Assembly: GCA_003427395.1 (NCBI GenBank)
Contig: BFEA01000001.1
Coordinates: forward strand, 10,423,030-10,487,029
Source of the DNA: Chara braunii
Lineage: Eukaryota > Plantae > Charophyceae
DNA length: 64,000 nt
Reading direction: 5' to 3'
In this document: piece after piece, positions 18,742 to 60,191 of the stretch
How positions within the stretch are numbered: the first letter of the stretch is position 1
Layout: the number at the start of each line of letters is the position of its first letter
Notes under the pieces: generated by a model
Database searches by the model: none
The model's input: the letters and a program-made list of their open reading frames with translations, nothing else
Told to the model about the DNA's origin: nothing
Position numbers and translations under genes: made by a program

Positions 18742-18801
<60 letters not shown>

Positions 18802-18830
18802 NGCATCATCATCATCATCATCATCACCAC

Positions 18831-18862
<32 letters not shown>

Positions 18863-24489: not shown

Positions 24490-24558
24490 CAAGTAAGAAT
24501 AGGGGCAGCCTCGGCAGCTGCAGCTCCCTTAGCTAACGGGCCTGGACGGGTAGGAAAC

Positions 24559-29868: not shown

Positions 29869-30075
29869 ACCTCTTCAGATTCTCTACTTTCAGCACAAGT
29901 GCTTGGGTAAAGGCTTTCTTCAATCTGAAGAAAGCCAACTGGCGCGTGGGTGTCCATATGAAAGGGACATCCTTTGGCAACAGGTTAGTCAGGGGAGCGG
30001 CCACAGTAGAGAAGTTTCTAATGAACTTCATATTATAAGAGGCCAGTCCCATGAAAGACTTGGATGTCCCTAACA
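29866..30075 (-). pseudogene. Inverted fragment of a different Gypsy pol (RT thumb/connection)
   Basis: FMGLASYNMKFIRNFSTVAAPLTNLLPKDVPFIWTPTRQLAFFRLKKAFTQALVL is homologous to, but clearly different from, element A's own FLGLASYHRRFIKGFATIARPLTN... Confidence 0.88.
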
Positions 30076-30187
30076 GTCGGCGGCTGAGGCCAGTCCCTAA
30101 CTGCAGCCACCTTGGAGTCATCTAGGGAGAGGCCATCTGCAGAAATCACATGTCCCAAATACAAAACAGAAGAAGCACCAAAGGAAG

Positions 30188-34734: not shown

Positions 34735-35980
34735 TGTGTGCATACAAGAAGTGAAGTTTAATTCAAAAAAAGAAAACAAATCCTCATGTGGTGAGAATGA
34801 TCGAGGTTGACTCTGTGTAGTGTGTGGACTTTTGGTTGACTCTTTAATGTGATTGCAGATATGTTCTGTGGTTCGGACTTTGGATTTGATTGCCTGCAAT
34901 CATATACATATATATGGCTGTGAGGAGTCCCATTGTGATTGTGAGAAGTGATCGTCACGTACTTATTCCCATTTTATTATTGTATGTTTTTTAAAGATTT
35001 CTTAGTCGGACGTTGTTCCTGGGCCTGGATTCGAGGGCCTTGTCCACGACATCCCAGGTCCTAGACTCTGCATGGAAGGGATCACCCCCCGTGGAGAGCC
35101 TATTTGCCTTACCCACTGGGACACTCAGCCTAAAGGCCGAAGGTGCCTCGGAAGTCGCACGATTGTTCGTTCAACCGTGCAATATCGTGAAGGGGTAGAC
35201 CCTCACGATACTTCGAGTTTGACACTTGGGTGTCATAAGCGGTACTCGAACCCACGAGCGGTACTCAAACCCACGAGGGACCGCTTGATTATGGGCTCTA
35301 CATAGTACGCCATCATTGCGACTGCTTGCATATTCATACATTGCTAGTCGATATGAGAAGATCCTGCGTCCACGCGGTTTTATACTAAGTCTCGCGCGCG
35401 TCGCCTATCTGATTTTCGCATCGGAAAATTATGGGATGGCTACTGAAGGGACTAGGATTGTATGCGTTGTTCTGTTTGTGTCGTTTTGTGCGTGCGTGTG
35501 TATGTGTTTTAAATTTTTATGTTCTTAGAGTGGTGTACGGGTGACGTGTGGGAAGCATCCTAGTCGACCAACGACAGGTCGCGCTTAGGACCTCAGCCCC
35601 CCAAGGCGTTGGTTCTCGTGCAGGTCCGATAGAGGTGTAAAACCGCGCGTACCTCCTATGCTACAGCGAACAAGAAATGGCCTCGGCTGGTCCACCTCTG
35701 CGATTGCAGCTGATTAGCTTTCGTAATGTGGATTGGTAGCTCGACGAGGATACGCCCACCGAAGGGAGGTGACAGCTCCCATAAGGTGGAGGTAAGTCGT
35801 GTCTTGCGTAGGCCCTATCCTATCGTAGGGGCTTGCGAGGGGTATGGCTGGCGCACTCGACCGGAGCGGCTTGCGGAAACTCCATGTACATATCGTGATG
35901 AGGAATAAACCAACTCCTGCGTGACGTGGCCAGGAGGGTCCCGCCCCGTTCTGTGCGGTGTTGAACCGATACGCGCGACG
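34735..35980 (+). repeat. Third, more diverged copy of the 3' part of the family-B LTR
   Basis: 34790-34960 matches 56870-57040 and 35295-35980 matches 57460-58126. Confidence 0.85.
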
Positions 35981-38900: not shown

Positions 38901-41900
38901 AAACGGGATACCACGTGTGTACCTGCCCCCTTTCACGCGAAACGAAGAGCGACGGCTCGCTGGGAAGTTCAACGATACTTTTTAGATTGAATTTACCATA
39001 GTTGTGAGTCCCCGCACACGCCTTTATCTCCCTTAAAACCTGCGCAGCGATACATTCGAACCAACACGGGGGATTTCCAGTTATGTCAGTGTCCCCGCAC
39101 TCAATTTTCCAAAAATCTTTGGCACACCCCATCTTTGCTGCCTTTCCCCATTGTCGGTGCGAATACTCTTACAAGGGTATCCACCCTGGCTTTTGCAAGT
39201 GACATAAAATAAGTTTGGTTTAAAGTCTAAATATTTCGCGCGAGGCGCGACTGCGTCTGTGACTTACGTTGGCTGAAGGTTGACTAGAATAGAGAGTGTC
39301 TGGGCGCACGGGCTTGAGGCGCCCATTATTTTATTTATTGATGACTGAAGAACCGGCGTGATCGCCGACCAGATTTTTATTTATTTATGATTTGAATTAT
39401 GATTAAAAATATTTTTGCCTTTTGATTGGTGCGCTTGCGCGTGACTTGTGCGACGTGCGGAAAACGGCGTCGACAACAATGTGATTTTGAAGACATTTCG
39501 GTAGATCTACGCGTCGCGCAGTATTCTCTTATTTAGGTGTCCGTCAGCCTTGGGCCTAACACTATTGGTTACAGCGTCTGACTTTCATCTGAGAGATTCA
39601 GGGATCGAGATCGAGCAGCGACGACGCGGGATATTAGAGTAGCGCGAAGGGGCCGAGGGGTTGAGGGCCCGACGGGGCTATTCCCCTTGGTTTTGCCGTT
39701 AGCGGAGTCGCAGCGGCGCCAACGGTTCCTTTTACAGTCATCGCTGACCATTAAAATTTTAAATGTGTTATTATTTATCGTCATTCTTAATTATTTTATG
39801 TTTTAGTGTTCTCTGAATCAAGACGTGGCGCCGGGTTTGAGGGCCGTCACGGCGGCCGAAGACCTTGAGCGTGCACTTCCCTTAGTTGACCAATGGGGCT
39901 TTGTTGGGGGACCGTAGCGATGTCGCGGCAAGTTGAAGACCATGGTGGACCCATCACTACTTCGGTCCTCAAAGTTCTCATTTGAATATTTGCTACTATC
40001 ATTAAGATCTGCATCAGGACCCCCCCCTCCGACTGGAGCCATGCCTCAGGCCTGCAGTAGGCCCGGAAACTTGATTTTGTGTGTGTGGGCGGCCGCTGGT
40101 GGGCAGTGGTGGCCAAAGGCAGTGGCGCAGTCCGCCTGACCGGAGCAGGCCAGAGATAGACCAAGGGGAGGCTGTAGTGGGATGGCAGCGAAGCCAGCTG
40201 GCCACACTGCTCGTCGGGCAGAGTATAGAGGCGAAAGACTCATCGACCGTCTGATAATCGGCCATTTTCGGGCTATCGCTTACGGAAAAGGTGACCAAAC
40301 TGTGTTGGGCATTGCGGGGCCGCCGTGGTCGGATGCTGCATCGGTGGCAGCGGGGCAGAGCAAGGCAGCAGAGCGATGGGGCTAAGGCAAGGAACGTAGC
40401 GCAAGCAGAGGGAAACGAACCCGGGCTGGAAAATGCGCAAGGTGCATGCGAGAGCCACAGGCTATGGCAGAAGGAGAAGGGAGTGGAAAACATGAAACCC
40501 GCCCGATCCTTGATGAAAACGGGTGGGGAAAGAGTCGAGGCTAAGTTTTCTAGGCAGGGCGAATTAGATTATGCAGTTAGTTTATGGGTTAGAGGGTTGT
40601 GTAGAGTGGTTAGTGAGAAAAGCACCGTGTGAAGGTATGGCAAAGATAGAGGGAAAGTGAAGAAGAAGGAGGTGGATGAATACATATCTCGCCCATTTCC
40701 GGACGAAATCGGCTGAGGGAGGACTCAAACCGGGGGTTTTGGGGCGTGGCGGCCCCGATTCTGAAGTCATAATTAGTAAAAAGTTAGCAGAAGAAGATTT
40801 AGTAGAAAAAAGTGCTGCGTGAAAGTGTCGGGAGAGGTAGATATGACAGAGAGTGGGGAGTTTAGCCCATCCGATCCTTGACAGAATCGGACGAGGGGAG
40901 CCGCGTTTTGGGTGATCTGGAGTAAGATGGATGCGATGAAGATCTTAGTTCTGTTAATACGTTAGTAGGAAGGTGGATAAGAAGGGGCTGCATGGACGGG
41001 GGGGGGATAGCAGAAAGTCCAGGTATCTAATTGTGTTCAGGCGGTAGGTTCATTCAATTTTGCTCACTGTATCGATGGACGTAGCCGCTGCTTATCCCTC
41101 TACGCATACGATTCGAAGGCGGTATATCATTTTACATTCTAGCGGGAGATCCATTTATGACTTGAAGATAGTGGGGCAGTTGATGCCACACGCATTGGTC
41201 GGAGTCCCGGTACGACTCGTACGGGTCTCGATCCCGGTGAAGTTTTATGTAGGCTACCATCCTCGCTTTTGTTAGTGCTCTTGGTCTTCGCTCTGTTGCC
41301 GCATGATAACAACGGTGATCCCCATAGCAGTCGAGCTGACAAAGGAATAACGAGTAGGAGAGTGAAAGGATAAACGAGAAGAGAATGGGGAGATGGGCAA
41401 AAGGAGAGTCAGGCAGAGGCAGGGGAAAGGTTGAAACTAAAGACTCACCTGCTCACTGATACACTGCCCGAACTGAGGAGATTGCAGGCCTAGCTGCTGG
41501 CCAGTGGGCCGCCAAATGCATTAGCCGAAGTGACGAGGAGGGTCAACCACGGGGTGAAAAAACCTTGCCTTGCAAACACGCGTTGCCCAGTGAGCCACTG
41601 ACAGTGGAGTAAGGTCCGCCGTGAAGATTTGCAGATTGACTGGTGTGCTGCCGTTTATACCAGGCAGAGTAGTGTGAGTCCGACCACGGGCTGAATACTT
41701 GTTAGAGCTTGGTAAAGGCTACACAATCAGCACATGCGCACACTCCACCTGTTGAGTGACCAGCTAAACTGCGGTGACTGTTGTCGTTATGGCATGAGAG
41801 GGGACCGAGCTTCGTGGTGCTGACCCGAGTCTGAAGCCATAGCTAGTCGGACTGCGCTGCTGTTACACTGTGGTGCCGTAGAAAGAAGACTGTCTTGAGC

Positions 41901-42564
41901 TGTAACCTGTGCATTTCGGGTCACGAAGTTATGAAATGGTTGAGTCCTTGAAGGAGGCAGAGTCGTCGTTGCGAAGTGGGAGAGTCGTCAGGGAGTCAAC
42001 GGTTGAATGATTTGACTTCAGTCGACCAGGCTGGTAAGCACTTCCGCCATCATCGCGGGGTCCTCAAGCGTGTCAAGGTATCAAGGACTTCTCCCGCGAG
42101 TCTAAGAGCACCCTCCTTGGATCTGAGAGACTGAATCATTCTTCCTCTGCCTTTCTTACTCTAAGTCTAGTATATTGGTTACGAGAGGAAGGCGGCAGGC
42201 GGGATTGCAACCTGTAGGACCGCATCAAGACTTTGTGGGGAGTCCACCCACCGATTGCGGGAACTCTGCCGGAACCTAGGCGAGGTTCTAGAGGCAGGGA
42301 ACCATCAGGTAAATCATCTCTGTCTGTATGACCCACCATGCCGATGTCTGCCTATCTCCCTGTTGTTTGACTGATGTATGTACGTGATTGCCCCTATGAT
42401 TTTACTTTCTTCCAGTACTTAATCAGACTAAATGGAAGGAGTGTATGAAAGTGAAGCATAAGTTTCATCTTTATTTCTGTCTGAAAACAGATTAAGGTAT
42501 GAAATGAGGGAAGATGGGAGGAATGCAGACTGCATGCGTTTGACCGAGTCAACCAAGGACTGGG

Positions 42565-43168
42565 CATTGTTTTTAAGCTGAATGGCTCAGGGCTATGTTT
42601 ATTTGGCTGTTTCTGAAGGGTCAGGCATTGTTTCTAAGCTCAATGACATGGTTGTTGTGTTTTTTTCTGAGGGTTTGCCTGGCTGAAGGGTTTAATCACT
42701 TGTTTCATTCTGAGGGAGGATTTTTTGTCTAAGGCTAAGCATTGTTTCTAAGCTGAATGGTTTAGCCTGAAACCACGCATATAAGTATAAACTGAGTGTA
42801 AAAGAAAATACTTTACTTATATTTCCATGTGAACTTGCAGTTGGGCATTGTTTCCAAGCCGAATGGTCCACACTAAGCCATATCACTAAGTAGAGAAGGA
42901 AAACTCCAGAGTATAATTGGAAGTAGTCTGGGCAAGCTGAACATTGTTTCCAAGCCGAATGGTTCAGTCCCTGCCCATATTTGCATTTTCTTTTGAGAAT
43001 AAAGTCAGAAAGTTATTAATATTTGGATATTAAACAGTTCAGGGCGGCTAGGCATTGTTTCCAAGCCGAATGGTCTAGTCAAATGCCCAAAGGAGAGAGA
43101 AGTGGTAGTGTAACCTGTTCGTGTATATCTTAAAGGCTCACTAGACATTGTTTCTAAGTTGAATGGTC
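42565..43168 (+). repeat. Seven interspaced 22-bp motifs CATTGTTTCYAAGCYGAATGGT
   Basis: Copies start at 42565, 42626, 42740, 42846, 42942, 43053 and 43146. The spacers are dissimilar. Confidence 0.9.
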
Positions 43169-43469
43169 TAGCATTGTGCCATATGTAAGTTGGGTATAAG
43201 GGTTGAATCATCAGAGGGTTTCATGAACTATCTTATATAAAGTGACTTCGGGCTGGTGAGAGTACTTATCTTTGTGGTTTGGCCTTGCATGTGACTGAGT
43301 GAGATTACTACTTGGTCCGAGTTTCAGTTTGATAGGTAGCTGTTTTAGACGCTCGCCACGTGCTAGAGCCACAAAAGTTAGTTTCAATTCCTGCATTTTC
43401 TAGGTTAAGTTTATTTTTACTTAGGTCGATTTCTGAATTTTCTGGGATCATTTATTATACTTGGTCTTG

Positions 43470-43792
43470 TATAAATTTTGGTAAGGCACTTTCTCTACGG
43501 GAAGTGCTGCCGAAATTTCTACAAAACCAACGAGTTAGTCAGATTTTATCTTTTTCAGGGTCCAATTTTTAAGACTTTTTGGCTTAGTAAAAATTTGAAA
43601 AACCTCCTTTTCTAAAGGGAGTGCTGCCCAAATTTTTACTAGTTCAGGGAGTTCGACAAAATTTGGCTTTCCAAAATTATAGTTGATTTTTTTTTTCATA
43701 TTTGAGTTATTATAAATTTTGAGAAGGTATTTTTCCTACGGAAAGCGCTGCCGAAATTTTCTTAATTTATAGGAGTTAGGTTATATTTTGAC
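43470..43792 (+). repeat. Three diverged ~120-bp tandem units with core GTGCTGCCGAAATTT
   Basis: Cores near 43504, 43621 and 43746; the same units occur in the 3' LTR at ~56270-56590. Confidence 0.75.
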
Positions 43793-44439
43793 AGGTGGCA
43801 ATCCTAAAAATCCACTCTGTATAGAGGAGATTCTGTCAGGGTCTACCTTCTTTTGGCGCGTCGCCTATCCGATTTCCGCATCGGAGAGTTATAGGAAGAC
43901 TACTAAGGAACTAGGAGTGTGGTCGCGTTGTATGTTTTGTGTCGTTTCGTGTATATGTACGTGTGCGTGTTTTTTATGTTTTGTAGAGTGGTGTGCTCGT
44001 GGAGTGTGGGATGCGTCCTAGTCGCCTGACGACGAGTCGCGCTTGGGACCTCGACCCCCTAAGATGTCGGATCGCGTGCGGGTCCGATAGAGGCGTATTA
44101 CTGCGCGTACCCCCTATGCTACAACGAACGAGAAACACCCTCGACTGGTCCACCTCTGCGATTGCAGCTGATTAACTTTCGTACTGTGGACTGGTAGCTC
44201 GGTGGGGATACGCCCACCGAAGGGAGGTGACAACTCCCGTAAGGTGGAGGTAAGCCGTACCTCACGTAGGCCCTATCCTATCGTAGGGGCTCGCGAGAGG
44301 TATGGCGGCGCACTCGGTCAGAGCGGCTTGTGGAAACTCCATATGTATTTGCGACGAGGATTAAAACCAACTCCTGCGTGACGTGGCCGGGATGGTCCCG
44401 CGCTGCCTTGTGTGGTGCCGGACCGATGCGTTCGACAGG

Positions 44440-44458
44440 TGGCGCCGTTGCCGGGGAT
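44440..44458 (+). promoter_or_regulatory. Primer-binding site, tRNA-Asp (Athila-type)
   Basis: TGGCGCCGTTGCCGGGGAT, 2 nt after the LTR end. Confidence 0.93.
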
Positions 44459-45552
44459 AACGGTTGTTTGCCGTTGTCCCTGGTGGAACGATATCCGGGT
44501 ATGGGAATGTGATAAATAGTCAAAGAAAGAAGTTTTTTTTTGAGTTTAATTGTTTGATGGTATAAAACAGAGTGAAGGTTGACTGTGCGAGTTGGTTTTG
44601 TTTGATACAGTAAGGGTGGCACGAGAGCGATAAGCGTTTTGACTATGAGCTTACGTACTCTGACTGATAAGATGGTAGTTGGAGATGGTACGTCTTCTGG
44701 CCACGATAGTTGACAAATTTGGACGTTGCTTTGCATGGTTGATATGGTCAGGGTAAGATGAGGGAACGTCGATATGAGTAAGAACGTCCATTGAGGAAGT
44801 TGGCCCTATAAGGTACCTATTATGGTTGAAAAAGTTATCTGAGTGGTGATGAGAGCGACTTTGTACTTTTGTATTAAAGTGAGATCGAGGATGAGTAAGG
44901 GAGCCTATTATGTTAGAGGTCGTCAAAGGACTTCGAGGAGAGTTAAGCTAATGACGTTCAAAGTCTTTATAAGTATGGATATGGGATCCTTGGGTCTAGG
45001 TTCTAAGCGATTGTTCAATTTATATAGTCATAGGAGGCTGAGGGCTGCCTCCATGATGTGTTTGAACTAGGTGTATAAGGTTGTAGGTAGACGCAGTACA
45101 CGCCATGTTGAGACCTCAATAGAAGAGACTACGTGACGTAGTAGGTCTGCATAGTACCCTCTCTGCAAAGGAAGACTATTTTGTTCACCCTTGATAGGAC
45201 TATGAGTTGAAGTTGATGTTAGACATTCGCTTGAACATTTTCGGACTTGGACCATCCACGTGAATCTATGAGGTTAGAGCTAAGGACTTGAGACTATTCT
45301 CTTCTAAGGGCATCCCTCTTGAGTTATATATTGAACTCATCCATATATGTCAGATGTTGTCTGAATAAGCTTGTCTAATATCTCATCATGTAAGGCTAAG
45401 TGCTTAGTGATTATATTCTTTTAATGATTATCCTTGTCAGAAATATTTACATAGGCTATGTATCTGGAGTATGTATTTGAACTTATCAAGTCTGCAAGGA
45501 TTTATATGAGCGTCTCAAGTCCAATTATCAACCTATGGCTGTCTATTAAGTT

Positions 45553-45789
45553 CTACGTTGCATAGAGTACACGTACGGGGGCTTCCCGTACAAAACGTAC
45601 AGGTTATTTTTATACGGGATATGTACGGGAACCTGTACGGGAACCTGTACGTCTTGTACGCCCCCGTACNNNNNNNNNNNNNNNNNNNNNNNNNNNNNNN
45701 NNNNNNNNNNNNNNNNNNNNNNNNNNNNNNNNNNNNNNNNNNNNNNNNNNNNNNNNNNNNNNNNNNNNNNNNNNNNNNNNNNNNNNNNN

Positions 45790-45837
<48 letters not shown>

Positions 45838-46055
45838 TCATAAAAAAAATCCGAAAAAAAAACTATGTGATGCAACAACGCAAACCAAGCAACATTTGGC
45901 TGAGCATCATCTTCAGATTCTTATTAGAATTTGAGAAAAAAAATAAAACCAATACCGGATTAAAAAAAAAAAAAAAAAACTCGTACGGGGCCCCTAGCGT
46001 ACGAGTAGAGTACGAGTCCGTACTCGTACGAGGGTGCGTACAAGTGGCAACGTAG
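45553..46055. mobile_element. hAT-type MITE (contains a gap)
   Basis: 9-bp TIR CTACGTTGC/GCAACGTAG, perfect 8-bp TSD ATTAAGTT (45545-45552 and 46056-46063), many CGTAC/GTACG subterminal motifs. Confidence 0.92.
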
Positions 46056-47127
46056 ATTAAGTTTGTGTTTGAATTGCTCCTCAAAGAGGGGTAGAGATAT
46101 TATGCAAAATCCACGTCTGATGCGGATTCAGAGGTGAATGACGTGACCGTTTTCTTGAGATAAGTACCCCTCAGGAAGTGACCAATGTATAAGGTCTACC
46201 CCAAGGAAAGTTGCAATCCTATGTTATTGTTCTCCTGAGAGATCGCTTTGAAGAAGATATAATTTTGTCTTGTAAGTAGTAGTAAGACCCACACCGGAAC
46301 TCTGTTCCTGGTCCATAGTGGGGTGTTGTTTTTGTATCCTCTTTGATAAAATGACGGTACTACTACTGAAAGGGAGAAAGGTATTTGAGCCTTGTCAGAC
46401 CATGGCCTATGAGGAAAGCAACTACTACATGCCACAAAAAGGTAGGGGTTGAATCCCCAACTATTTTTGCGTCAAGTAGGTTCACCAGCACAGGACGAGA
46501 TAGCGCATCCCGAAGCGTGTATGATGAGGTTGGTTACTTTGTAGGCAAGGATCTGCAAGGAGTCAGTGATGGAATCGGATGGAGAAGCAGTGAGGCTTGA
46601 TCTTTGAGTGAGACTCAGGGATTTGAGATGGTATCCTTTCTGAAAAGGATTACACTGCCCCTCGCCACAATATACTTCTGTCAAAGCTAGGGGGTACAAT
46701 GTGGTACTCTCGTTGGTATTATGTCTGAGAGTGCTAATTGTTAATGGTCTTATCTCTGATCATAACGTGTCTATCATATGAAATGTATGTGGATATAAGC
46801 TTATTATGAAGTACTTGTATGTACTTTGAATTACTGACTAGCTCATACGTACTGCGTTTGGTTGTTATAAAGAATTATTGATGTTAGATTATCAAGGTGA
46901 TATATCATTGTCCATAAGTAATTATTATTATGAGTTTGTGATAGCTGTGAATAAACTGTTACCATGATATATTACCATTATTTTTTTCTCTAAGTTGGGT
47001 GGTCATAAACACTAGAAAGGATGCCTTTTAGTGAAAGATGATTTGAGGTTAAGGCCTTAGAGATAGAGACTCTTGGACGCGATTGCCAGCATAGCAACGA
47101 AAGGCGTATGCTGGACGTTTTTTTGTG

Positions 47128-47820
47128 ATGGGCAGAACCCAGACCAGAGCGAAGGCAACTCAGGATACCTTATGCTAAGGAAGATCCCAGGGTGACCTTG
47201 CCAGTCAAAAGGAAGATAGATTTGAGATGTCTTTGCCAAGACGAGTCAAGGAAAGAAAGTACATCTCTTCCTGGTGGACCGTGCTGATAGATAAGGGGGG
47301 TTTTGTCTGGATCGAGTCTGGCTTTGATGATGACCGAGACTGCGCGCTCGTGAGGGTGACCCTATATGCTCCACCATCATTTTGGGTCTTACAAGGGATT
47401 GAGTTGGCGCTTGGGTATGAAAGCCTGTTGAAGAGGCCTTTGAGGGTAGCCGAGGGAGTTGCAGCGAAGTGGGCGAGTGATAGGGTCCAGGAAGGAGAAG
47501 AGCAGGTGGAGACTTGTATAGAGATCAAACGTGCCGAAGAGTTCACACTTCCTTCATCCCCATTGAGAGTTATCTTGTCGGAGTTCCTGATAGAAAAGTG
47601 TTTTGGGGGACAAGCAAGGGTAGAGGCCGCAGCAGAGGCCGCTTTGAGGATGCGAGTGTGGGGGTACTCGCAATACACGTGCGAGTTAATATATGGCCTG
47701 TACCTGGACCTAAGGTTTATGCCCCATATGGTCAAGATTGTTGACACTTATGCTGGCTCCCATGATCCGGATGACAGGGCTGCAGATTGGGACGAGATTC
47801 ATGCGGTAGTGGGTCAATAG
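47128..47820 (+). pseudogene. Unknown-family paralogue P5, upstream of gag in element B
   Basis: EMSLPRRVKERKYISSW resembles P2 EMSIPSRNKWR*TICGW. VETCIEIKRAEEFTLPSSPLRVILSEFLIEKCFGG resembles P3 VTTEVKTAMAGTFTLPSKNVRMRLPPFLLQRMGG. One early in-frame stop. Confidence 0.72.
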
Positions 47821-48151
47821 AGAGTACTTTGCCAAGTGCGTCCCTCATAGACTTGTCTATGGCCGCCCCTACTAGGTGATACGAGTACGAAGGCCAGTGG
47901 TACTTGTAGCCTCGATTACTGTCTGCCTAAGACTGGCTTTGAAAGCTCTGCGTATGTAGGATGTATATTGTTTATAGTACCCTCAAAGTATGAATAGGGG
48001 TGACTAGAGTTCATAGTCGTATTGTGTGAGCGAGAAGAGTTAGTGTGGCTGAAGTATTAGCAGCCTTTACTAGCCTTATTGTTTTGAACCTTCTTGTGTC
48101 ACAACCTGATGATCAATTGTTTGTCATGCGTGTCAGGCCAGTATCAACATC

Positions 48152-49168
48152 ATGGTTGAAGAAGGTGGTTTCGCCATGATCCTGCTCTGGAGGAGCTTGT
48201 GCCTCAGCAAAGTGCTGCTGTGCGAGTCGGTACAGGACTCGATGCCTCCAGATCTTCGTGCTTTGCTGTTTCAGGGAAGGAATTTGTCTGCCTTCCTACG
48301 CGGCTATCATGGCTTCAGTCTCATGAAGATGTGGGACGAAAAAGCGATGTCGAGCATGTTGCCGTTGTTTGTCTGCAAAGAGTTGAGTGAGGAAATGTAT
48401 ACTCTTATGGTAAAGTCGCGGACATGGGGTGAGCTGAAAACCTCTCTGAAGTTAAGGTTTCCCGAGGGTGCAGTAGAGAGCCAACTTGGTGAAAGCCATG
48501 TGCAACTAGCTGAGAATGCGTCAACGCGAGGAGAGCTAAGTGGTATACAGAGGCAAGTTGGGGTATTGGAAGAAAGGTTGACGCGACTAGAAGAGGCCAG
48601 ATATAGCAAGAGGAAGGTTTTTGAAGGTACGTCAAGTAAGCCGACTGGGCAGGATGGAGCAGAGGCAAGGGATGCTGATCGAGAGTCACTCCTCCGCAAA
48701 AGAACCCTGAGAAGGCGGGCTTGTGCTCAAGGGGGAGATGAAGGCGAGAGGTTGATTGAGGCAAAATTGGAACAGAAAACTAGCATAGCCCTGCCTATTG
48801 TTTCGTATGATCCGAAGAGGGGGGCTGTTGACGTGGAAGCGTCGTCAACTGCAGATAGGAGGGAGCGAAGGAGTAAGAGAGGGCGAGAACACTGGGCAAA
48901 GATGGTGTGTGATTGTTGTGAAAAGGCTGGTCATACCCCTCGAAGATGCAAAGAAAAGGGGATGACAGAGAAAAAAGAGGAGCCTGAACCTCCCAAGTTA
49001 ACGAAAGCACAGCGGAAAGCGAGAAACCCGGCCCAGGGAAGTCAAGGTATTGGAAAGGGGCAGTGTTCGCGACAAGTAGCGGCCGCCCCACAAGAAGTGG
49101 GGCCCACAAGAAGTGGGGGACAAAGCAACACAAAAGGGGCCTCTGTCGACCGAGCGGGAACTAAATAG
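48152..49168 (+). pseudogene. gag-like ORF of element B
   Basis: FQGRNLSAFLRGY...W...TWGELKTSLKLRF capsid-like start, a coiled-coil segment and knuckle CDCCEKAGHTPRRC. Confidence 0.75.
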
Positions 49169-52086
49169 GCAGTGGGCGTCGTGTAATCAAGTGGGTCTGC
49201 GGCCGATGTATAATCCATGTGTGTCATGGGCACAAGGCAGCTGTTTGGGCCCACAAATGAGCATGATGACGCTTGGGCCTCCCGCAATGCAGATCCGACC
49301 AACTTGACCTATGGGACTGTTGCGGCCACCAACCCAATAAGTGTCACAAGGCGGCGTGGCCGGTGGAGGAAGCCAAACACGGCAAACTGGAAGAGGCCGC
49401 GGGGATGGAGGACGAGGCAATGAAGGGCGTGGTGGCGGCAGAGGAGGCATTAGTGGGTGTGATGGACGTCGGCGGAACCATAAGTGGAATACAGGGAAGA
49501 GAAAGGTATGATAAACGGTAATTCAGATGGTAGCCGAGTAGGTAAAGTAGCGAAAGGAACGGGAAAGAGATGGTGGCGTGAAAGTTGATAAAAAGATGGG
49601 GTTAAAGAGAGTGTAGTAGTGCGAAGAGAGGAGTAACCCTAACCCTTAAGTTTGGAAAATATTCAGTCAGATGATGGTCCTGGATCGCCTTGGTTTGTTT
49701 TACCTTCAGTAGATTCAGTTGTATATACAAGGGCGTAGAGCTAGGATAGCAGGCTAACCAATTGTGTGATTTTAATTTCGTATTTTAGTCAGCAGGGAGC
49801 CTGACAATATACCAAGAGAGTTTCGTAATAATGGTCTGGTAAGGTAACCCGAGTTGTAGGCGGGAGGGACCCCAATAGAACAACTGTATATGTGGGGTAT
49901 GTTAGGCCTGCCTCAAATCGCGTTATTGGAATGTCTCAAGTGGATAGAGCAAGGAGTGGTTTTAAGGACATTATTACGAAATGAAGAGTCTATTCCACTA
50001 GACCTATCGTTGAGAGAAGAAGATATGAGACCTATTTTGTGTTTAGGTCAGGATGGTTGAACATGTGTGAGAAGTATGAAGGACTTGGGAAGAGACCTCA
50101 GCATATGTGAGGCAGACTCTCTAACCTAGAAGTGTAGTATATAAGGCTTGTGTATGAATGATTTTTTATGTTGCTTGGCTACTTAGATATGTCTTGAATT
50201 ACTTGGATCCCTCCGATTTGAGGGGTGTGATTACGTCCTGATCAAGACTGTTTCAATTTTAGCTCTGGTCAGGGAGACCGCGATTTTTGTGTGATATCGA
50301 TGCCAGTGTGAGTTGAGATTGTTCAACTCTGTGTGTATATATATAATTCAAAATCATATTGGTTCGCTTTTGAGTTGGGATATTATGTTCTGAAGTGTAT
50401 ATTTGAGTTGAGATTTTATCTGAGACTATCTCCTTATATATGACGATCACATTCACTCTCACATGTGTGGTTTTATCCTGATGTATGATGGTTTTGTGAG
50501 AGAGATGTATGAGGAACGTCTTATGTGTTTGTATTTTGAGAATGTGAATGAATTTGAACTGTCTACTCTTCGGTATACTCGTACGATCTGCCCATGGACG
50601 GGTGATAGGGCCGGGTATAAGAAGAGGGAGTGCAGTCTGTCTTTGTGAAAGAGTGTGAGAATCCTAAAGGATCTAATGAGTTTTTTAGGCTCGAACGCTT
50701 TACCATGCCTAATGTTTATTGTTGAGTTGTGATGAGGACCCATAAGTTGGTCCCTTTGTTTGAGTTGTTTTATGGTAAAGACGTCTTTGAGTGGGAACGC
50801 AGTCTTTTGTTTATTTGGAAGACTTATCTTTAGAGAGGGAAAATGTGTTAAAGAAAGGTCGCGTGAAAGTTCATCCTAAAAAGAGAAGGGATGACTGGGA
50901 GACCTATTGAGTGATACCTCCTTCATATGAAAGGTGGTTAATAAATTTAATGGCATGAAAAACTGATTTTGAATGATAAAGACTGACGAGAAGAACCAAG
51001 TTTTTTGTTTGGTCATTTGGTAAAATTTTGGAGGTCGCAAAAATGATTTATTTGGGAGACGTCGCTGAGAGGTGACCTTCTTACTCTGATCAAGTAGGGA
51101 GGTCACGGCCTCGTGAATCTGGCGGTGATTTTGTTTTGTGAATGTGGAGAGGTTGTCGTGTTTCTCTGTGTTGTCCCACAGAGGACTGGTAAATACCTTT
51201 TATGTGTGACAGACCTTTGCGTAGTCCCACAGTAGGCCTGTATTGTTGCGACACACCGTCCAACCACTTGTGCTAATTTTAGGACATTTATGAGAATACC
51301 AAGCTAACGGTAAAGTTTAGCATCACTAGGGCACAACCCCTAGTGTCGGCTGCTGATCGGCATAACCTGAACAGTAGGCCTACGTCTTGCCAAGGGAGTA
51401 AAGACTTAAAAGGGTGTGGCCACCTAAGAGGGTCTTACTCCTGCGGAACGGCGTGGGATAGGAATCGAGTTGAGTCTTTTTGAGTCCTGATTGAATGCTT
51501 ATCAGGAGAAAGTCTATCTCAGCGCAACCTGCGAAGGCACTACCGCTAAAATAACGACGCGGCCGTAGATCTGGCACGATCACCCAGGCTACCGTGGACC
51601 AAGATGGAGACCTAGCCTTCCTGTACTAGACTGCAGGAGGCGTTTGAGATAAGATTTATGTATATATATATATATGTTTCATTGCGAGAATTGTTGGAGG
51701 GAGGCAAAAGTGTCTTCAAAGTTCTCAGTTAGGGCTCGCGTCCCTAATTTTGGCCCTGCTTGCAGGGTAGAAATTAAGAACGCCTAATGAGGAGCTGACG
51801 TTTGTCTAGGACAAAGGGGAAATGACAACTGAGAGGGCCGCTGAGGCTTATGCTGTAGTACGTATGTCTAGTACACCGACATCCTAGTGTCAGGACAATA
51901 GAGACCCATGTTAGAATCCTGACGGCATATAGTTATATGGGCTTGGATTGTTGGAGGCCTCGAACCTGAGTCTGTTGGCTAATCGGATTGATTCCTTTCT
52001 CGTCAGCGTTTTGGATTATGGTTGAACTGATAGTTTTTTTGATCCTGCGAAGCGACGGGGACGTCGCTTAATATGGTCCGGTAAGC

Positions 52087-55000
52087 TGTCGGTGCAAATA
52101 CCCTTACAAGGGTATCCGCCCTGGCTTTTGCAAGTGACAAAAAATAAGTTTGGTTTCAAATCTAAGTATTTCGCACGAGGCGTTGCTGCGTCTGTGACTT
52201 ACGTTGGCTGAAGGTTGACTAGAATAGAGAGTGTGTAGGCGCGCAGGCTTGAGGCGCACGTGATTTGATTTATTGATGACTGAAGAACCGGCGTGATCGC
52301 CGACCATATTTTTATTTATTTATGATTTGAATTATGATTAAAAATAGTTTTGCCTTTTGATTGGTGCGCTTGCCCATGACTTGTGCGACATGCGGAGGAC
52401 GACGTCGACAACAATGTGATTTTGAAGACGTTTCGGTAAATCTGCGCGTCGCGCAATATTCGCTTATTTAGGTGTCCGTCAGTGCTAGAACCAGCCTTGG
52501 GCCTAGCACTATTGGTTACAGCGTCTGACTTTCATCTGAGAGATTCAGGGATCGAGATCGAGCATCGACGGCGCGGGATATCAGAGTAGCGCGAAGGGGC
52601 CGAGGGGTTGAGGGCCCGACGGGGCTATCCCCCTTGGTTTTGCCGTCAGCGGAGTCGCAGCGGTGCCACAGTTCCTTTTTCAGTCATCGCTGGCAATTAA
52701 AATTTTCTAAATGTGTTATTATTTATTGTCATTGTTAATTATTTTTATGTTTTGGTGTTCTCTGAATCAAGACGTGGCGCTGGGTTTGAGGACCGTCACG
52801 GCGGCCGAGGACCTTGAGCGCGCGCTTCCCTTAGTTGACCAACCGGGCTTTGTTGGGGGACCGTAGCAATGCCGCGGCAAGCTGCGGACCATGGGGGACC
52901 CATCGCTACTTCGGTCCTCAAAATTATCATTTGAATATTTGCTACTATCATTAAGATCTGCATTGGGACCCCCCCTCCGACTGGATCCATGCCTCGGGCC
53001 TACAGTAGCCCCGCAAACTTGATTGTCTGTGTGTGGGCGACCGCTGGTGGCCAAAGGCAGTGGCGCAGTCCGCCTAACCGGAGCAGGCCAGAGGTAGACC
53101 AAGGGGAGGCTGTAGCGGGCTGGCAGCAAAGCCAGCTGACCACACTGCTCGTCGGGCGGAGTATAGAGGTGAAAGACTCATCGACCGTATGGTAATCGAC
53201 CATTTTCAGGCTATCGCCTACGGAAAAGCTGACCAAACTGTGTTGGGCGTGGCGGGGCCGCCGTGGTCGGATGCTGCATCGGTGGCAGCGGGGCAGAGCA
53301 AGGCAGCGGAGCGACGGGAAGAGTGGAGTCGAAGTTTTCTAGGCAGGGCGAATTAGATTATGCAGTTAGTTTGTGGGTTAGAGTGCTGTGCAGGGAGGTT
53401 AGTGAGAAAAGCATCGCGCGAAGGTATAGCGGAGATAGAGGGAAAGTGGAGAAGAAGGAGGTGGATGAATGCATATCTCGCCCATTTCCGGACGAAATTG
53501 GGCGAGGGAGGACTCAAACCGGGGGTTTTGGGGCATGGCGACCCCGATCCTGAAGTCATAATTAGTAAAAAGTTAGCAGAAGAAGATTTAGTAGAACAAA
53601 GTGCTGCGTGAAAGTGTCGGGAGAGGCGGATATGGCAGAGAGTGGGGAGCTTTGCCCATCCGATTTTTGACATAATCGGACGAGGGGAGCCGCGTTTTTG
53701 ATGATTTGGAGTAAGATGGATGAGATGAAGAAATTAGTTCTGTTAACAAGTTAGTAGGAAGGTGGATATGGGAAAAGAAGGGGCTGCATGGAGGGAGGGA
53801 GGATAGCAGAAAGTCCATGTATCTAACTTTTTTCAGGCGGTAGGTTCATTCAATTTTGCTCACTGTATCGATGGACGTAGCCGCCGCTTATCCCTCTGCA
53901 CATACGATTTGAAGGCGATATATACTTCTGCATTCTAGCGAGAGATTCATTTATCACTTGAAGATAGTGGGGCAGTTGATGCCACACGCATTGGTCGGAG
54001 TCGCGGTACGGCTCATACGGGTCTCGATCCCGGTGCAGTTTTCTGTAGGCTACCATCATCGCTTCTGTTAGTGCTCTTGGCCTTCGCTCTGTCGGCGCAT
54101 GATAACAACGGTGATCCCCATAGCAGTGGAGCTGACAAAGGAATAATGGGTCGTTAGAAAAGTGGAAGGATGAACGAGAAGAGAATGAGGAGATAGGCAA
54201 AAGGAAAGTCGAGCAGAGGCAGGGAAAATGTTGAGACTAAAGACTCACCTGCTCATTGATACGCTGCCCGAACTGAGGAGATTGCAGGCCTAGCTGCTGG
54301 CCAGTGGGCCACCCAATGCATTAGCCGAAGTGACGAGGAGTGCCCGCCACGGGGTGAAAAAACCTTACCTTGCAAACACACGTTGCCCAGTGAGCCACTG
54401 ACAGTGGAGTAAGGTCCGCCGTGAAGATTTGCAGATTGACTGGTGTGCTGCCCTTTATAGCAAGCAGAGTAGTGTGAGTCCGACCACGGGCTGAATACTT
54501 GTTAGAGCTTGGTAAAGGCTACACAATCAGCACATGCGCACACTCCACCTGTTGAGTGACCAGCTAAACTGCGGTGACTGTTGTCATTATGGCATGAGAG
54601 GGGACCGAGCTTCGTGGTGCTGACCCGAGTCTGAAGCTATAGCTAGTCGGACTGCGCTGCTGTTACACTGTGGTGCTGTAGAAAGAAGACTGTCTTGAGC
54701 TGTAGCCTGTGCATTTCGGGTCACGAAGTTGTGGCATGGTTGAGTCTTTGAAGGAGGCAGAGTCGTCGTTTGTGAAGTGGGAGAGTCGCCAGGGAGTCAA
54801 TGGTTGAATGATTTGACTTCAGTCGACCAGGCTGGTAAGCACTTCGGCCATCATTGTGGGGCCTTCAGGCGTGTCAAGGTATCAAGGCCCTCTCCCGCGA
54901 GTTGAGAGCACCCTCCTTGGATCTGAAAGACTGAATCATTCTTCCTCTGCCTAACTTACTCTAAGTCTAGTATATTGGTTACGAGAGGAAGACGACAGGC

Positions 55001-58000
55001 GGGATTGCAACCCGTAGGACCTCATCAAGACTTTGTGGGGAGTCCACCCACCGATTGCAGGAGCTATGCCGGAACCTATGCGAGGTTCTGGAGGCAGGAA
55101 ACCATCAGGTAAACCATCTTTGTCTGTATGACCCACCGTGTCCATGTTTGCCTATCTCCGTGTAGTTTGACTAATGTATGCATGTGATTGCCCCTATGAT
55201 TTTACTTTCTTCCAAGATTTAATCAGACTAATGGAAGGAGTGTGTGAGAGTGAAGCATAAGTTTCATCATTATTTCTGTCTGAAAACAAATTAAGGTATG
55301 AACTGGGGAAAGATTGGAGGAAGGCAGACTGCATGCGTTTAACTGGGTCAACCAAGGGCTGGGCATTGTTTCTAAGCTGAATGGTCCAGGGCTATGTTTA
55401 TTTGGCTGTTTTATGAAGGGCCATATATTGTTTCTAAGTTGAATGGCGTGGTTGTTGTGTTTATTTCTGAGGGTTTGCCTGACTGAAGGGTTTAATTACT
55501 TGTTTCATTCTGAGGGAGAATTTTTGGTCTAAGGCTAAGCATTGTTTCTAAGCTGAATGGTTTAGCCTGAAACTAGGCATATAAGTATAAACTGAGTATA
55601 AAAGAAAGTACTTCACTTATATTTGCATGTGAACTGGCAGTTGGGCATTGTTTCCAAGCCGAATGGTCCAGCGCTAAGCCATATCACTAAGAAGAAAAGG
55701 AAAACTGCAGAGTATAATTGGAAGTAGTCTAGGCAAGCTGAACACTGTTTCCAAGCCGAATGGTTTAGTCCCCTGCCCATATTTGCATTTTGTTTTTCGA
55801 ACAAAGTCAAAAAGTTATTAAGTTTTGGATATTAAACAGTTTAAGGCGGGTAGGCATTGTTTCAAAGCCGAATGGTCTAGTCAAATGCCCAAAGAAGATA
55901 GAAGTAGTATTGCAACATGTTCATGTATATCTTAAAGGCACGTTAGACATTGTTTCTAAGCTAAATGGTCTAGTATTGTGCTATATATAAGTTGGATATA
56001 AGCGTTGAATCATTTGAGGGTTTCATGAACTATCTTATATAAAGTGACTTGGAGCTGGTGAGAGTACTTATCTTTGTGGTTTGGCGTTGCATGTGACTGA
56101 GTGAGATTACTACTTGGTCTGAGTTACGGTTTGATAGGTAGTTGCTTTAGACGCTCGCCACATGCTAGAGTCATAGGAGTTAGTTTCAATTTCTGCATTA
56201 TTTTGGCTAAGTTTATTTTTACTTAGGTCGAAATCTGCATTTTCTGGGATCATTTATTATACTTGGTTTTGTATAAATTTTGGTAAGCGACTTTCTCTAC
56301 GGGAAGTGCAACCGAAATTTCTACAAAACCAAGGAGTTAGTCAGATTTTGTCTTTTTCATGGTCCAGTTTTTCAGACTTTTTGGCTTAGTAAAAATTTGG
56401 AAAACCTTCTTCTCTAAAGGAAGTGTTGCCCAAATTTTTACTAGTTCAGGGAGTTAAACAAAATTTGACTTTCCAGAATTATAATTGATTTTTGTTTTCA
56501 TATTTGAGTTATTATAAATTCTGATAAGACATTTTTCCTACGGGAAGCGTTGCCGACATTTTCTTAATTTAGAGGAGTTAGGTTTTATTTTGACAGGTGA
56601 CAATCTTGGAAATCCACTCTATATAGAGCAGATTCTGCCAGGGTCTACCTTTCTTTTGGCACTTTCTTAGAGGTAGACTCGGTTTACGACTCAACTCCAA
56701 TCCACTTTTGTCACTCAAGCTAAAGGCTTTAGTGTTGTGATTTGAATTGTTTTGTTGTGTTTTCGCCCGGACTTTATTTGAATGGTCATTTAAAGAAAAA
56801 TATTGAGTATTTTATTTTGAGAATTGCACAAAGAGTGAGGCTTGTATGGCTAAAAGCAAGGGGTGTGAGTGTAGAGAATGGTTGAAGTTGACCCCGTGTA
56901 GTGCATGAACTTTTTGGTTGAATCTTTGATGTGATTGCAGGTATGTTTGGTGATTAAGACTTTGGATTTGACTGTCTGCGCTCACATACATATATATATG
57001 GCTAAGAGGAGTCCCACTGTGACTGTGAGAAGTGATCGTCCTATATTAATAACCCTCTATATATATGTATTCAGTGTTTCGTGTGGCCTACTGTGACCGC
57101 GCGTAAGGGTTAAACAGATTATGTTTTCAAAGAAAATGAGACTTCCCCTTTTTAACATTTGTTTTTTAGAATTTTTATGGTTGGACGTTATAATCCGTGG
57201 CAGTCATCAAAGTCAAACCCCTTTATTTCTCTCGAGGCCGTAGATGATGGAGCTGGTCTCTAGGGCAATAAGAGTTGATTGTCACCACAGGTATGAACCT
57301 GTGTACCACCCACGCTCCGCAGGGTGCAGAAGAGGGTGTGGTTTTCAACCTCACTTGGCGGTTGTCCACCGTCGAGAGATCACCCCCAAAGGCGCGTATC
57401 AGCCGACACTTGAGTGTTGAATGCGACCCTCGAGATTAACAAGGACCGCATAAGCATGGGTACTACATAGTACGCCATCATTGCGACTGCTTGCGTATGT
57501 TTGCATTGAGAGTCGATATGAGTTAGCCCGGCGTCCGCGCAATTTTATACTAAGTCTCACACGCGTCGCGTATCTGATTTCCGCATCGGAGAGTTATGGG
57601 AAGACTACTAAGGGACTAGAAGTGTGGTCGCATTGTTTGTTTTGTGTCGTTTCGTGTATATGTACGTGTGCGTGTTTTTTATGTTCTTTGGAGTGTGGGA
57701 TGCGTCATAGTCGACCAGCGACGAGTCGCACTTAGGACCTCAGCCGCCCAAGACGTCGGTTCGCGTGCGGGTCCGATAGAGGCGTATTACCACGCGTACA
57801 CCCTATGCTACAGCGAACGAGAAACGCCCTCGGCTGGTCCACCTCTGCGATTGCAACTGATTAGCTTTCGTATTGTGGTCGGTAGCTCGGCGGGGATACG
57901 CCCATCGAAGGGAGATGACAACTCCCCTAAGGTTGAGGTAAGTCGTGCCTCGCATAGGCTCTATCCTGTCGTAGGGGTTCGCGAGAGGTATGGCTGACGC

Positions 58001-58126
58001 ACTCGGCCAGAGCGGCTTGCGGAAGATCCATATGCATTTGCGACGAGGATTAAAACCAACTCCTGTGTGACGCGGCCGTGGAGGTCCCTCACTGCCTTGT
58101 GCGGTGCCGGACGGATGGGCTTGACA
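52087..58126 (+). repeat. 3' LTR of element B (6040 bp)
   Basis: TGTCGGTGC...TTGACA, colinear with the 5' LTR, with the same seven-motif array at 55364-55970. Confidence 0.93.
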
Positions 58127-58196
58127 CCTGGCCCCCTTTCGCAAACCAAAACACTCCGACCGGAAGGCAGTGCAGGGGGTGAGGTTGAACGTCACA
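58127..58196 (+). mobile_element. Last 70 bp of the family-A solo LTR
   Basis: AACACTCCGA..GGAAG..GGGGTGAGGTTGAACGTCACA matches the end of the A LTR (AACACTCCGA..GGAAG..GGGCGTGAGGTTGGGCGTCACA). Confidence 0.85.
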
Positions 58197-58756
58197 TATT
58201 CCCGGTACGTCATGGCCCCCTTGAAGTCTAAACCGGTTGGTACTAGTACCACTCGCCGGACGTGCTCTGCGCCACCCATTCGCTGTAACAAAAAGGGTGG
58301 CAACCTCATTCGTACGTTTTTACTTGGCAGGGTGAAGGTACCTGCCATAGCGGTTTTTACTTCTGTCGTTACGTTATCTAACTCAGGTTCTGCAAACGCA
58401 AACCCCTCCCGCCATGTTAGTTGCCATGATCCTTTGAACATATACAGGGGGCCATCCCTAGATGCCAAAGTGATCGCAAAGGTACACCGACTTTCCTCCG
58501 ACAGATACAACGTCTCTTTAGCATAGATGCACTCCGGGAGATCCAGATTTCAGGCCCCAATTTTGTCCGTCGCATGCCATTATAGTTTCACTATCAGATA
58601 TACTGCATCCTCCACAAACTTTATACCTACCCAGTCCATTACCGGGTTACTCACCCCACTACTTGTTGACATGCTTATCTCCACCCTACTATCCGTTTTG
58701 CGTGGTGGCAGGATCCTAACTGGTCTGTCTTCCCAGAGCGTCCGTCTTCAAGCCAT
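58197..58756 (-). pseudogene. Unknown-family paralogue P3, N-terminal part
   Basis: MA*RR...VEISMSTSSGVSNPVMDWVGIKFVEDAVYLIVKL*W...TLYLSEESRCTFAITLASRDGPLYMF...LDNV...RLPPFL; one frame with three stops. Confidence 0.75.
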
Positions 58757-58879: not shown

Positions 58880-60191
58880 TTTTTCCCGTTCAATGCATGT
58901 TTTGACCCTTTACATGTCTCTCTGACGCCCTACTTGCTCGAGAGCTAGTTTTCTTTAGTCAAAACCATAGGGATTCAAACAATAAGAACACGTTGCCTAA
59001 ATAAGAGGGGGTCGTCGCCACCTCGTGGCGAAGTATAACATTTCTCGTTTCGTAATCCACCTCGGTCCGATCGTCCCTGACTGCTCTTAAGATGATGAGG
59101 ACCTCCTAAGCCCTGTCATTGTAGAAAGACCATTCTTCCAACGAGATTTTGTAAAACTCGTCGGACAGCCACGAGAACTCGAGGTATACATCGTCTAGGG
59201 ATTCCACTACTCTGTAAATATGTTCATAACACAAACGGTTATCGGGTAGTCGAAAATTCAGGAATGAAAATTCTGAAGTGAGAGTTTTTGGCCGTCTGAA
59301 AATCCTGAATGGTCCTGAAGTGGTGAAAGGTCCGAAGACCCTGAAAACCACCTGTTTAGGCAGGCTGCATCCTAAAGTGGTGAAGGGTGTCCTAAAGTGG
59401 TAAAGTGAGAGTTTTGGGCAGTTTGAAAATCCTGAATGGTTCTGAAGTGGTGAAAGGTCTAAAGACCATGAAAACCACCCTTCACCACTTGAGGATGCAG
59501 CCTGCCTAAACAGGTGGTTTTCATGGTCTTCGAAGCTTTAAGCACTTCAGGACCATTCAGGATTTTCGGACCTGAATGGTTATGAAGTGGTGAAAGGTCC
59601 GAAGACCCTTAAAACCACCTGTTTAGGTAGACTGCATCCTGAAGTGGTGAAGGGTGTCCTGAAGTGGTGATGAAAAATACGACTGTTGTTAACCTTCTCT
59701 CGTTCATAACCCCCGGACCAATTTGCCACAAAGCTCAACATCTAGGCCTGGGCTGATTGACACAACAGCCTGAATTCCTCCCATCCTCCCATAAGGACTT
59801 TGTTGCTAATCTCATCTCATCCCTCATTGACAAAACTATTTGCCTGATTTTTAGTCCAATGTTATGCTTCTCCTAAGATCCATATCGGGTCTTGTCCGGA
59901 TGCTAACGTTGTGCAAAACAGATGCCAACCTTTTTGCAACAGACAAATTGTTTCGAGGAACTCCACATCCCCCTTAACCATCTCGTCCCATCCTTCATCT
60001 TCCCTTATCGAGCTCCATATTCGTTCTACCCAGAAATATGAGAATTCTGAAGCGATCTCCAACTCGACCCAGCCACAGATAGTTCATCTCCACTTGTTTC
60101 TTGATGGTATGGACATTTCTACTCCCCCTCTGAGTTATCTTGGTCTCCATCCCCTAAGCTTGCGATCATTTAGACACTATTCTCTAGCCAT
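58880..60191 (-). pseudogene. Unknown-family paralogue P2, interrupted by a repeat insertion (3' end approximate)
   Basis: MARE*...VEMSIP...GWVELEIASEFSYFWVERIW...TICLLQKGWHLFCTTLASGQDPIWIL...RA*EVLIILRAV...VILRHEV...NVFLLF. Confidence 0.72.
59255..59675. repeat. Insertion of ~125-bp units in direct-direct-inverted-direct arrangement
   Basis: Unit cctgaatggtcctgaagtggtgaaaggtccgaagaccctgaaaaccacctgtttaggcaggctgcatcc... at ~59304, 59430 (partial) and 59571; reverse complement at ~59478-59568. Confidence 0.88.

Follow-up and report, generated by a model that had tools for sequence, protein, structure and literature searches.

An open reading frame upstream of gag in giant LTR retrotransposons of Chara braunii: a probable accessory gene retained in pol-less elements

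Comparison of a 64,000-nucleotide stretch of Chara braunii DNA from contig BFEA01000001.1 (hereafter, the window, to which all coordinates refer unless a locus is named) with other Chara loci suggests that an open reading frame located between the leader and gag of an LTR-bounded element, which we denote ORF0, is probably a bona fide accessory gene encoded by the element. Under this interpretation, ORF0 encodes a sense-strand protein of ~224-236 aa, evolves under purifying selection, is present in a single copy in a family of pol-less elements that carry ORF0 and gag, the window element included, and occurs as diverged tandem copies in other families; the copy in the window itself is old and decayed. 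The carriers of ORF0 appear to form a clade of giant Ty3/gypsy-type LTR retrotransposons, so far only found in Chara, with a PBS of the Athila type (tRNA-Asp/Asn).

The element that hosts ORF0 is 19 kb long, with an internal region of 7.6 kb (Table 1). Self-comparison of the window identified two direct copies of a 5.3-6 kb sequence that are 91% identical, and alignment shows that the LTR boundaries are common to the Chara loci L001-L003 and L007-L010. The structural features of LTR retrotransposons are present, namely, two LTRs in direct orientation, TG...CA termini and a PBS adjoining the 5' LTR. The same LTR-PBS junction is found in L001-L003, L007 and L010 and, with two differences, in L004. 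The order PBS, ORF0, gag, all on the plus strand, is reproduced in L001-L003, L007, L009, L010 and L004. No target-site duplication was found, the flanking sequences being CCCAT (39147-39151) and CCTGG (58127-58131), which could be explained by decay, the LTRs being 9% diverged, or by recombination involving two copies. The segment of ~0.9 kb that distinguishes the 3' LTR from the 5' LTR corresponds to an insertion or a deletion. A further fragment of the same LTR family (34793-35980) aligns with the final ~1.2 kb of the 3' LTR at 79-83% identity; it terminates in ...CGCGACG with no PBS after it and is either a solo LTR or what is left of the 3' LTR of a different copy. Elsewhere in the window, there are two other retroelements (8246-14080 and 25514-27100, both on the plus strand) with RVT_1 ORFs at 11532-12518 and 25514-27100, neither of which is related in DNA sequence to the ORF0 family; a dense array of short tandem repeats, their period being 9-15 nt (18572-19008), inside the ORF 18655-19113; and an uninterrupted 946-aa ORF on the minus strand (3242-6082) that contains a Xan_ur_permease domain (E=2e-61) and is probably a host nucleobase/ascorbate transporter gene.

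Table 1. Features of the ORF0-carrying element, the minus-strand ORF0-like copies and the related element in locus L004
Feature	Coordinates	Strand	Description
5' LTR	39152-44437	+	5286 bp; termini TGTCG...CGACA; 91% identical to 52087-56660 plus 57562-58126
PBS	44440-44457	+	TGGCGCCGTTGCCGGGGA; two bases (GG) after the LTR end; sole match in the window when up to 3 mismatches are allowed
Leader	44458-47127	+	2670 nt with 62 ATG triplets; assembly gap 45670-45789; alignable at 69-78% with L002, L007 and L010
ORF0, disrupted N-terminal part	47128-47226	+	MGR ATG at 47128; TAA at 47176-47178; segment homologous to MPYAREDP... at 47165-47218, in another frame
ORF0, open part	47227-47820	+	197 codons and stop; longest open frame there
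ORF0-gag spacer	47821-48151	+	331 nt; CAG|G conserved ~15-20 nt before the gag ATG
gag-like ORF	48152-49168	+	338 aa; 25 Chara homologues; no Pfam or PDB match
Non-coding tail	49494-52086	+	alignable at 70-73% with L001, L007, L009 and L010; no pol
3' LTR	52087-58126	+	6040 bp; ~0.9 kb extra (56660-57562) compared with the 5' LTR
ORF0-like copy C (P3)	58127-58711	-	profile positions 58-152, E=3.5e-5
ORF0-like copy B (P2)	59715-60146	-	internal stops; profile positions 12-130 with X at stops (60146-59763 covered)
ORF0-like copy A	60436-61049	-	two frames, colinear: 61049-60813 (E=0.18, profile positions 14-67) and 60765-60436 (E=1.8e-6, positions 91-159)
L004 LTR-PBS junction	L004 8167-8190		CGACA-GG-TGGCGCCGTTGTTGGGGATC; same junction type as in the window
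L004 ORF0 copies	L004 10001-10672; 11062-11730; 9120-9242		second copy with two stops; 9120-9242 is a remnant
L004 pol	L004 14467-14874 (PR); 15492-16376 (RT); 17468-18361 (IN)		gypsy order

The assignment of the ORF downstream of ORF0 to gag is based on its position and on the CCHC knuckle of the intact copies. In the window, the continuation of this ORF is frameshifted (49080-49493), with matches of the gag profile in two frames, and the conserved C-terminal CCHC knuckle of the family (CRHCAKEGHIMKFC), which in other copies lies further downstream than 48920-48965, was not found downstream of the window ORF. The CX2CX4HX4C 'zinc knuckle' at 48920-48965 (CDCCEKAGHTPRRC) is peculiar to the window copy; the other copies have CDRWGKIGRTPQG in its place. 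At E<=0.1, Pfam contains no family that matches the window gag, its full-length homologues or the gag candidate of L004, and a PDB sequence profile search for gag also returned nothing. Searches of the internal region with the RT ORFs from the window itself and with PR, RT and IN of the related element yielded no match, and the longest ORF in 49169-52086 is 94 aa. In its layout, with a gag-like ORF followed by a non-coding tail and the 3' LTR but no PR, RT, RH or IN, the window element resembles L001, L002 and L007-L010.

The window copy of ORF0 is itself degraded. The interval 47128-47820 had been described in the earlier note as an ORF with an MGR start, and the MGR ATG is indeed where it had been placed, in the same frame as the ORF0 body; however, translation from it meets a stop after 16 codons, and only the distal part of the interval is open. 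Where L001-L003 have the usual MPY start, the window copy reads ATA; alignment with L002 also reveals a gap of 1 nt just upstream of 47227; and an extra base, common to the window copy and L002, puts the MGR codons out of phase with the ORF0 body. The open part matches the family profile A4, in which the window ORF is itself included, at E=1e-103, and the frameshifted N-terminal piece is also matched by this profile. With ORF0 (at the N-terminus) and gag both broken, LTRs that have diverged by 9% and no target-site duplication, the window element is an old, inactive, decayed insertion. The 197 open codons of its ORF0 need no special explanation, and because this copy is decayed, the argument for function rests on the ORF0 family rather than on the window copy.

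The ORF0 family is linked to the elements. Loci L001, L002 and L003 share the architecture of the window element, that is, LTR, PBS, leader, ORF0, gag, tail and LTR, without pol. Because these three loci were retrieved through ORF0 itself, the comparison was repeated with gag alone as the query. Altogether, ORF0 was found upstream of gag in seven further pol-less copies, including four of the five gag-only loci: L007, L009 and L010 contain a full ORF0 240-340 nt upstream of gag, and in L008 the C-terminal part of ORF0 is visible up to an assembly gap; the fifth locus, L006, is a 600-bp gag fragment between gaps and has no ORF0. The sample for the family of the window element consists of eight copies, three of which were found through ORF0. 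The possibility that ORF0 is a one-off capture, which had been named as an outcome that would overturn the accessory gene reading, is contradicted by its presence in the loci ascertained through gag (three full copies and one partial) and in 12 of 25 gene models retrieved through gag. Throughout, ORF0 is in the sense orientation, between the PBS and leader on one side and gag on the other, in accord with the proposal that it is an accessory gene of LTR elements.

The substitution patterns show that ORF0 is a protein-coding sequence subject to purifying selection and at least as constrained as gag. Among seven copies, pN/pS in the sense frame is in the range of 0.25 to 0.36, with a median of 0.33, compared to the median of 0.41 for gag. 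Retention of ORF0 without pol, which had been noted for the window element, extends to seven other members of its family. In the out-of-phase control frames, the values are 1.0 to 1.25, and in the codon-phase antisense frame, the value is 0.40. The JC-corrected dN/dS of ORF0 is 0.13 to 0.27, these values being pairwise averages in which individual positively selected sites could be masked. The sense translation is conserved all the way to L004 at E=2e-20. An antisense ORF (47205-47747, minus strand, 180 aa) overlaps ORF0 in codon phase, with a similar one in L001 (10042-10551); we rejected it as a real gene given its pN/pS and the lack of conservation of its translation to L004 (E=0.35 or worse), and it looks like a by-product of the codon usage in the sense strand.

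These observations bear directly on the possibility that ORF0 is a passenger without a role, either a captured fragment of a host gene or a chance ORF. Taken in isolation, the window copy would be compatible with this scenario: it is broken, and we estimate that 197 open codons could persist by chance at 9% LTR divergence. In the family as a whole, selection is specific to the sense frame, ORF0 is present in the copies ascertained through gag and is conserved across families whose gag genes have diverged almost beyond recognition, and all homologues that could be placed are either linked to elements or fused to gag, with no free-standing host gene found. The passenger scenario is already largely refuted, and we consider it hardly credible. 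The earlier proposal that ORF0 benefits the element itself is supported at the level of the family; the decayed window copy, from which it had been derived, says nothing on current benefit.

At least 21 homologues of ORF0 were identified in Chara. When 1.84 billion representative proteins were searched with a profile, 13 matches were obtained. Apart from one short ENA fragment, 12 of these come from Chara; the remaining match, a repetitive protein of unchecked origin, we take to be spurious. The best relatives of the window ORF are CBR_g868, CBR_g22164 and several others, at 59-68% identity. Among the genomic copies, the window ORF0 shares 59-66% identity with seven from Chara and 27-29% with those of L004, and identity between families is 25-29%. 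The intact forms are either 236 aa long, starting with MGRTQTK..., or ~224 aa long, starting with MPYAREDP.... Two environmental sequences, contig L005 (ENA ERZ27272674 k141_578542) and protein P0011 (ENA ERZ21986211), contain ORF0 N-termini that are 53-60% identical to the Chara family, from which it follows that the family is probably represented in other Characeae. A metagenome scan with profile A3 recovered only a BFBZ contig, which is L003. Every match thus comes from Chara braunii or is one of two short environmental fragments, which bears out the claim of lineage specificity, and our literature search found no paper describing the Chara ORF0 family. Many of the 'hypothetical proteins' among the Chara gene models (P0004-P0010, P0016, P0017, P0025, P0030-P0032 and P0034) are chimeras of ORF0 and gag, i.e. 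retrotransposon sequences annotated as host genes. In our analyses, the fused ORF0-gag proteins were used as the database gene models were returned, and sequences with internal stops were included as separate pieces or with X at the stops.

One of the database models, P0012 (CBR_g49181), is a spliced gene model whose locus, L004 (BFEA01000734.1), carries a much larger, autonomous element that is a distant relative of the window element. This giant, gypsy-order element occupies positions 2700-30361, with an LTR of at least 5.5 kb and an internal region of ~20 kb. The visible LTR portion at 2700-4611, truncated by a gap at one side and by the end of the locus at the other, is 100% identical to 28450-30361, and given this identity the element may have been active recently. 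Several unassigned ORFs follow the integrase (18784-21096, 23998-24990 on the minus strand and 26432-27157). The gag of L004 is not matched by the HMM profile of the window-family gag and is only weakly related to it by hhalign (E=2.6e-4). Since ORF0 is recognizable between families (E ~2e-20) and gag barely so, ORF0 is an old component of the clade, and its conservation is no weaker than that of gag. No autonomous partner carrying the gag of the window family itself was found; one candidate, P0034 (gag plus RT), was rejected because it combines an RT with a gag fragment located 13 kb away, on the other side of an assembly gap.

Duplication of ORF0 is also apparent within the window, where three decayed, divergent ORF0-like copies are arranged in tandem on the minus strand at 58.1-61.0 kb. 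The earlier note had linked ORF0 to two of these (P2 and P3) by short strings, all of which are present: EMSLP... at 47224 and FTLPSSPLRV... at 47542, both in frame 0, and, on the minus strand, the P3 string FTLPSKNVRMRLPPFLLQRMGG at 58336 and the P2 string EMSIPSRNKWR*TICGW at 60119. The similarity is real but weak. Pairwise tblastn of ORF0 against the window recovered only ORF0 itself at E<0.8, and a P3 query likewise gave no cross-hits. The relationship was detected with profile A4, which was built from the Chara homologues and the window ORF, without any P sequence, and was searched against 1985 six-frame pieces of the window; its hits on the minus-strand copies are colinear with ORF0. Smith-Waterman comparison with 2000 shuffles gave z=6.4 for P3, z=4.4 for P2, and z=3.5 (61049-60813) and 10.4 (60765-60436) for the two pieces of copy A, which in the count of copies was also delimited as 61016-60526. 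The 'P3' ORF is chimeric: its 57803-58126 part is the 3' LTR of the ORF0-carrying element read in reverse, and because the ORF runs into this reverse strand below 58127, copy C is cut short C-terminally at the LTR boundary. Only these three copies were confirmed, where at least four had been claimed; the best candidate for a fourth, 36469-36194 on the minus strand, reached E=0.19, and this only with an iterated profile, and remains unconfirmed. The broader claim that copy number varies holds: there is one ORF0 in the window family, two and a remnant in L004, and at least three copies in the minus-strand array of the window.

The gene models raise the question of whether ORF0 is a separate protein at all or, alternatively, the N-terminal domain of a Gag isoform that is joined to gag by RNA splicing. 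Among the annotated gag gene models of Chara (25 in total), 12 have an ORF0 part fused to gag, the junctions in these models fall just before the gag ATG, and the CAG|G sequence at this point is conserved in all six alignable copies. However, ORF0 terminates at the homologous position in each of the seven copies that were aligned, six of which have TAG there and one, L010, TAA, and this stop is followed by a spacer of 240-330 nt in a different frame; the predicted donors vary (after residue ~83, 103, 120, 178 or 213), and most of them would remove conserved portions of ORF0; in L004, both full tandem copies have an initial ATG of their own; and the gene models themselves may be ab initio predictions on paralogous sequence. 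Taken together, these features make the spliced isoform distinctly unlikely. One point that counts against the preferred interpretation of ORF0 as a gene of its own concerns translation: ORF0 is preceded by the 62 ATG triplets of the leader and itself precedes gag, which makes the translation of either gene hard to account for.

The sequence and predicted structure of the ORF0 protein offer few clues to its activity. Searches of Pfam with ORF0 and its homologues gave nothing; a PDB sequence profile search produced only chance matches to designed repeat proteins; and two AlphaFold2 models of ORF0, with pLDDT of 40 and 52, had no Foldseek match below E=0.2 in PDB or BFVD. The protein is acidic (pI ~5), rich in tryptophan and devoid of conserved cysteines or histidines, which makes a basic nucleic-acid chaperone or a zinc-finger protein unlikely. 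Origin of ORF0 as a duplicate of gag was rejected: the hhalign probability is 0.1% once the models that contain ORF0 are removed from the gag alignment, two earlier apparent matches between ORF0 and gag having resulted from contamination by fused gene models.

The pol-less, non-autonomous family has shed all enzymatic genes and kept exactly ORF0 and gag, and retention of precisely these two genes under selection suggests that ORF0 and Gag act preferentially in cis. Under this scenario, ORF0 would act together with Gag on the RNA or the particle of the element itself, either as a partner of Gag or as an assembly or packaging-specificity factor supplied in cis, whereas an autonomous relative that has this LTR terminus and type of PBS would provide PR, RT and IN in trans. 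We advance this mechanism, which is extrapolated from gene content, tentatively, as a possibility that could well prove wrong. A still bolder extension, which we regard as rather unlikely, is that ORF0 is the founder of a new class of retroelement proteins required in cis alongside Gag, such that ORF0 and gag would comprise a minimal 'self' module for helper packaging, with ORF0 being more ancient and better conserved than gag in a charophyte clade of gypsy-type elements of 20-30 kb and tandem duplication giving rise to specialised paralogues.

A different kind of role could be envisaged as well, namely, counter-defence: similar to the accessory proteins of retroviruses, ORF0 might, for example, antagonize silencing or restriction by the host. 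Lineage restriction, divergence and duplication are common in genes involved in host-parasite conflict, and ORF0 displays all three: it has no homologues elsewhere, the identity between families is low, and the tandem duplicates have diverged. Yet, as far as the average pN/pS can resolve, there is no indication of an arms race, and a diffusible suppressor could be used in trans, in which case its loss would be expected in a non-autonomous parasite, as happened with pol, whereas ORF0 was retained. A counter-defence function accordingly seems improbable, about as much so as the spliced isoform, and action of ORF0 in the service of the element, alongside Gag, is the reading that we prefer.

Elements with additional ORFs upstream or downstream of gag-pol are documented among plant LTR retrotransposons (PMC7264820). 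ORF0 exhibits the features by which such ORFs upstream of gag are recognized in Ty3/gypsy elements, that is, sense position, recurrence and evidence of protein-coding capacity, and represents a new protein family of this known kind, comparable to ORF1 of Ogre and ORF0 of Retrosat2. Ogre elements, of the Tat lineage, have LTRs of 1.9-6.5 kb and one or two extra ORFs (PMC6431247). The Chara elements share with Ogre the sense extra ORF between the 5' LTR and gag, the giant size and the very long LTRs (here, 5.3-6.0 kb) but differ in the host, a charophyte alga, in the Athila-type PBS, in the tandem multiplication of ORF0 in some families and in its retention in pol-less derivatives. In Retrosat2, RIRE3 and RIRE8, a lineage-restricted ORF0 located upstream of gag-pol is much more divergent between families than pol (PMC3485330). 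These rice ORF0s are grass-restricted and single-copy, whereas the Chara ORF0 equals or exceeds gag in conservation and is kept in non-autonomous copies. No homology of the Chara ORF0 to Ogre ORF1 or Retrosat2 ORF0 was detected in the profile search of 1.84 billion proteins.

The loss of pol invites comparison with another group of elements. TR-GAG and other non-autonomous LTR retrotransposons are LTR-bounded elements that lack pol but keep an open gag-like gene. The Chara family has likewise lost pol and keeps a gag-like gene; it differs in that it also keeps ORF0 and reaches 19 kb through LTRs of 5-6 kb and a leader of 2.7 kb.

The description of the window element as Athila-like, given in the earlier note, stands in part. 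A TGGCGCCGTTGCC motif has been reported for the tRNA-Asp/Asn PBSs of ATHILA (bioRxiv 10.64898/2026.03.20.713144), and the PBS of the window element starts with an exact copy of this motif (44440-44452). Diaspora and Calypso use a tRNA-Asp PBS, and Diaspora has an untranslated leader of 873 bp (PMC1142308). The Chara element thus shares with the Athila lineage (Athila, Calypso and Diaspora) a PBS that starts with TGGCGCCGTTGCC and a long untranslated leader. In contrast, the extra ORF of Athila itself is env-like and comes after pol, whereas the Chara ORF0 precedes gag, and the spacer between the LTR and the PBS is AT-rich and 3-6 bp long in Athila but GG in the Chara element. No env-like ORF was found in 49169-52086, and the window gag has no match to the Athila or other retrotransposon gag profiles in Pfam. 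Pfam-A holds an ATHILA ORF-1 model. The label thus comes down to the type of PBS. A scan of the window and the loci with ARAGORN detected no tRNA genes with which the PBS could be compared.

Extra ORFs upstream of gag, such as Ogre ORF1 and the ORF0 of Retrosat2 and the RIRE elements, have been known for two decades, and to our knowledge, none has an assigned function. The Chara family provides an informative natural experiment in this respect: ORF0 is selected in derivatives without enzymatic genes and is found in tandem in autonomous relatives, and this combination of retention in pol-less derivatives and multiplication in autonomous ones argues that ORF0 serves the element itself, probably in cis. 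For the annotation of Chara braunii, the results imply that no fewer than 21 models annotated as 'hypothetical protein', many of which are chimeras of ORF0 and gag, represent genes of retrotransposons. More generally, they provide a first outline of the giant LTR elements, from 19 to more than 30 kb in length, in the repeat-rich genome of this alga.
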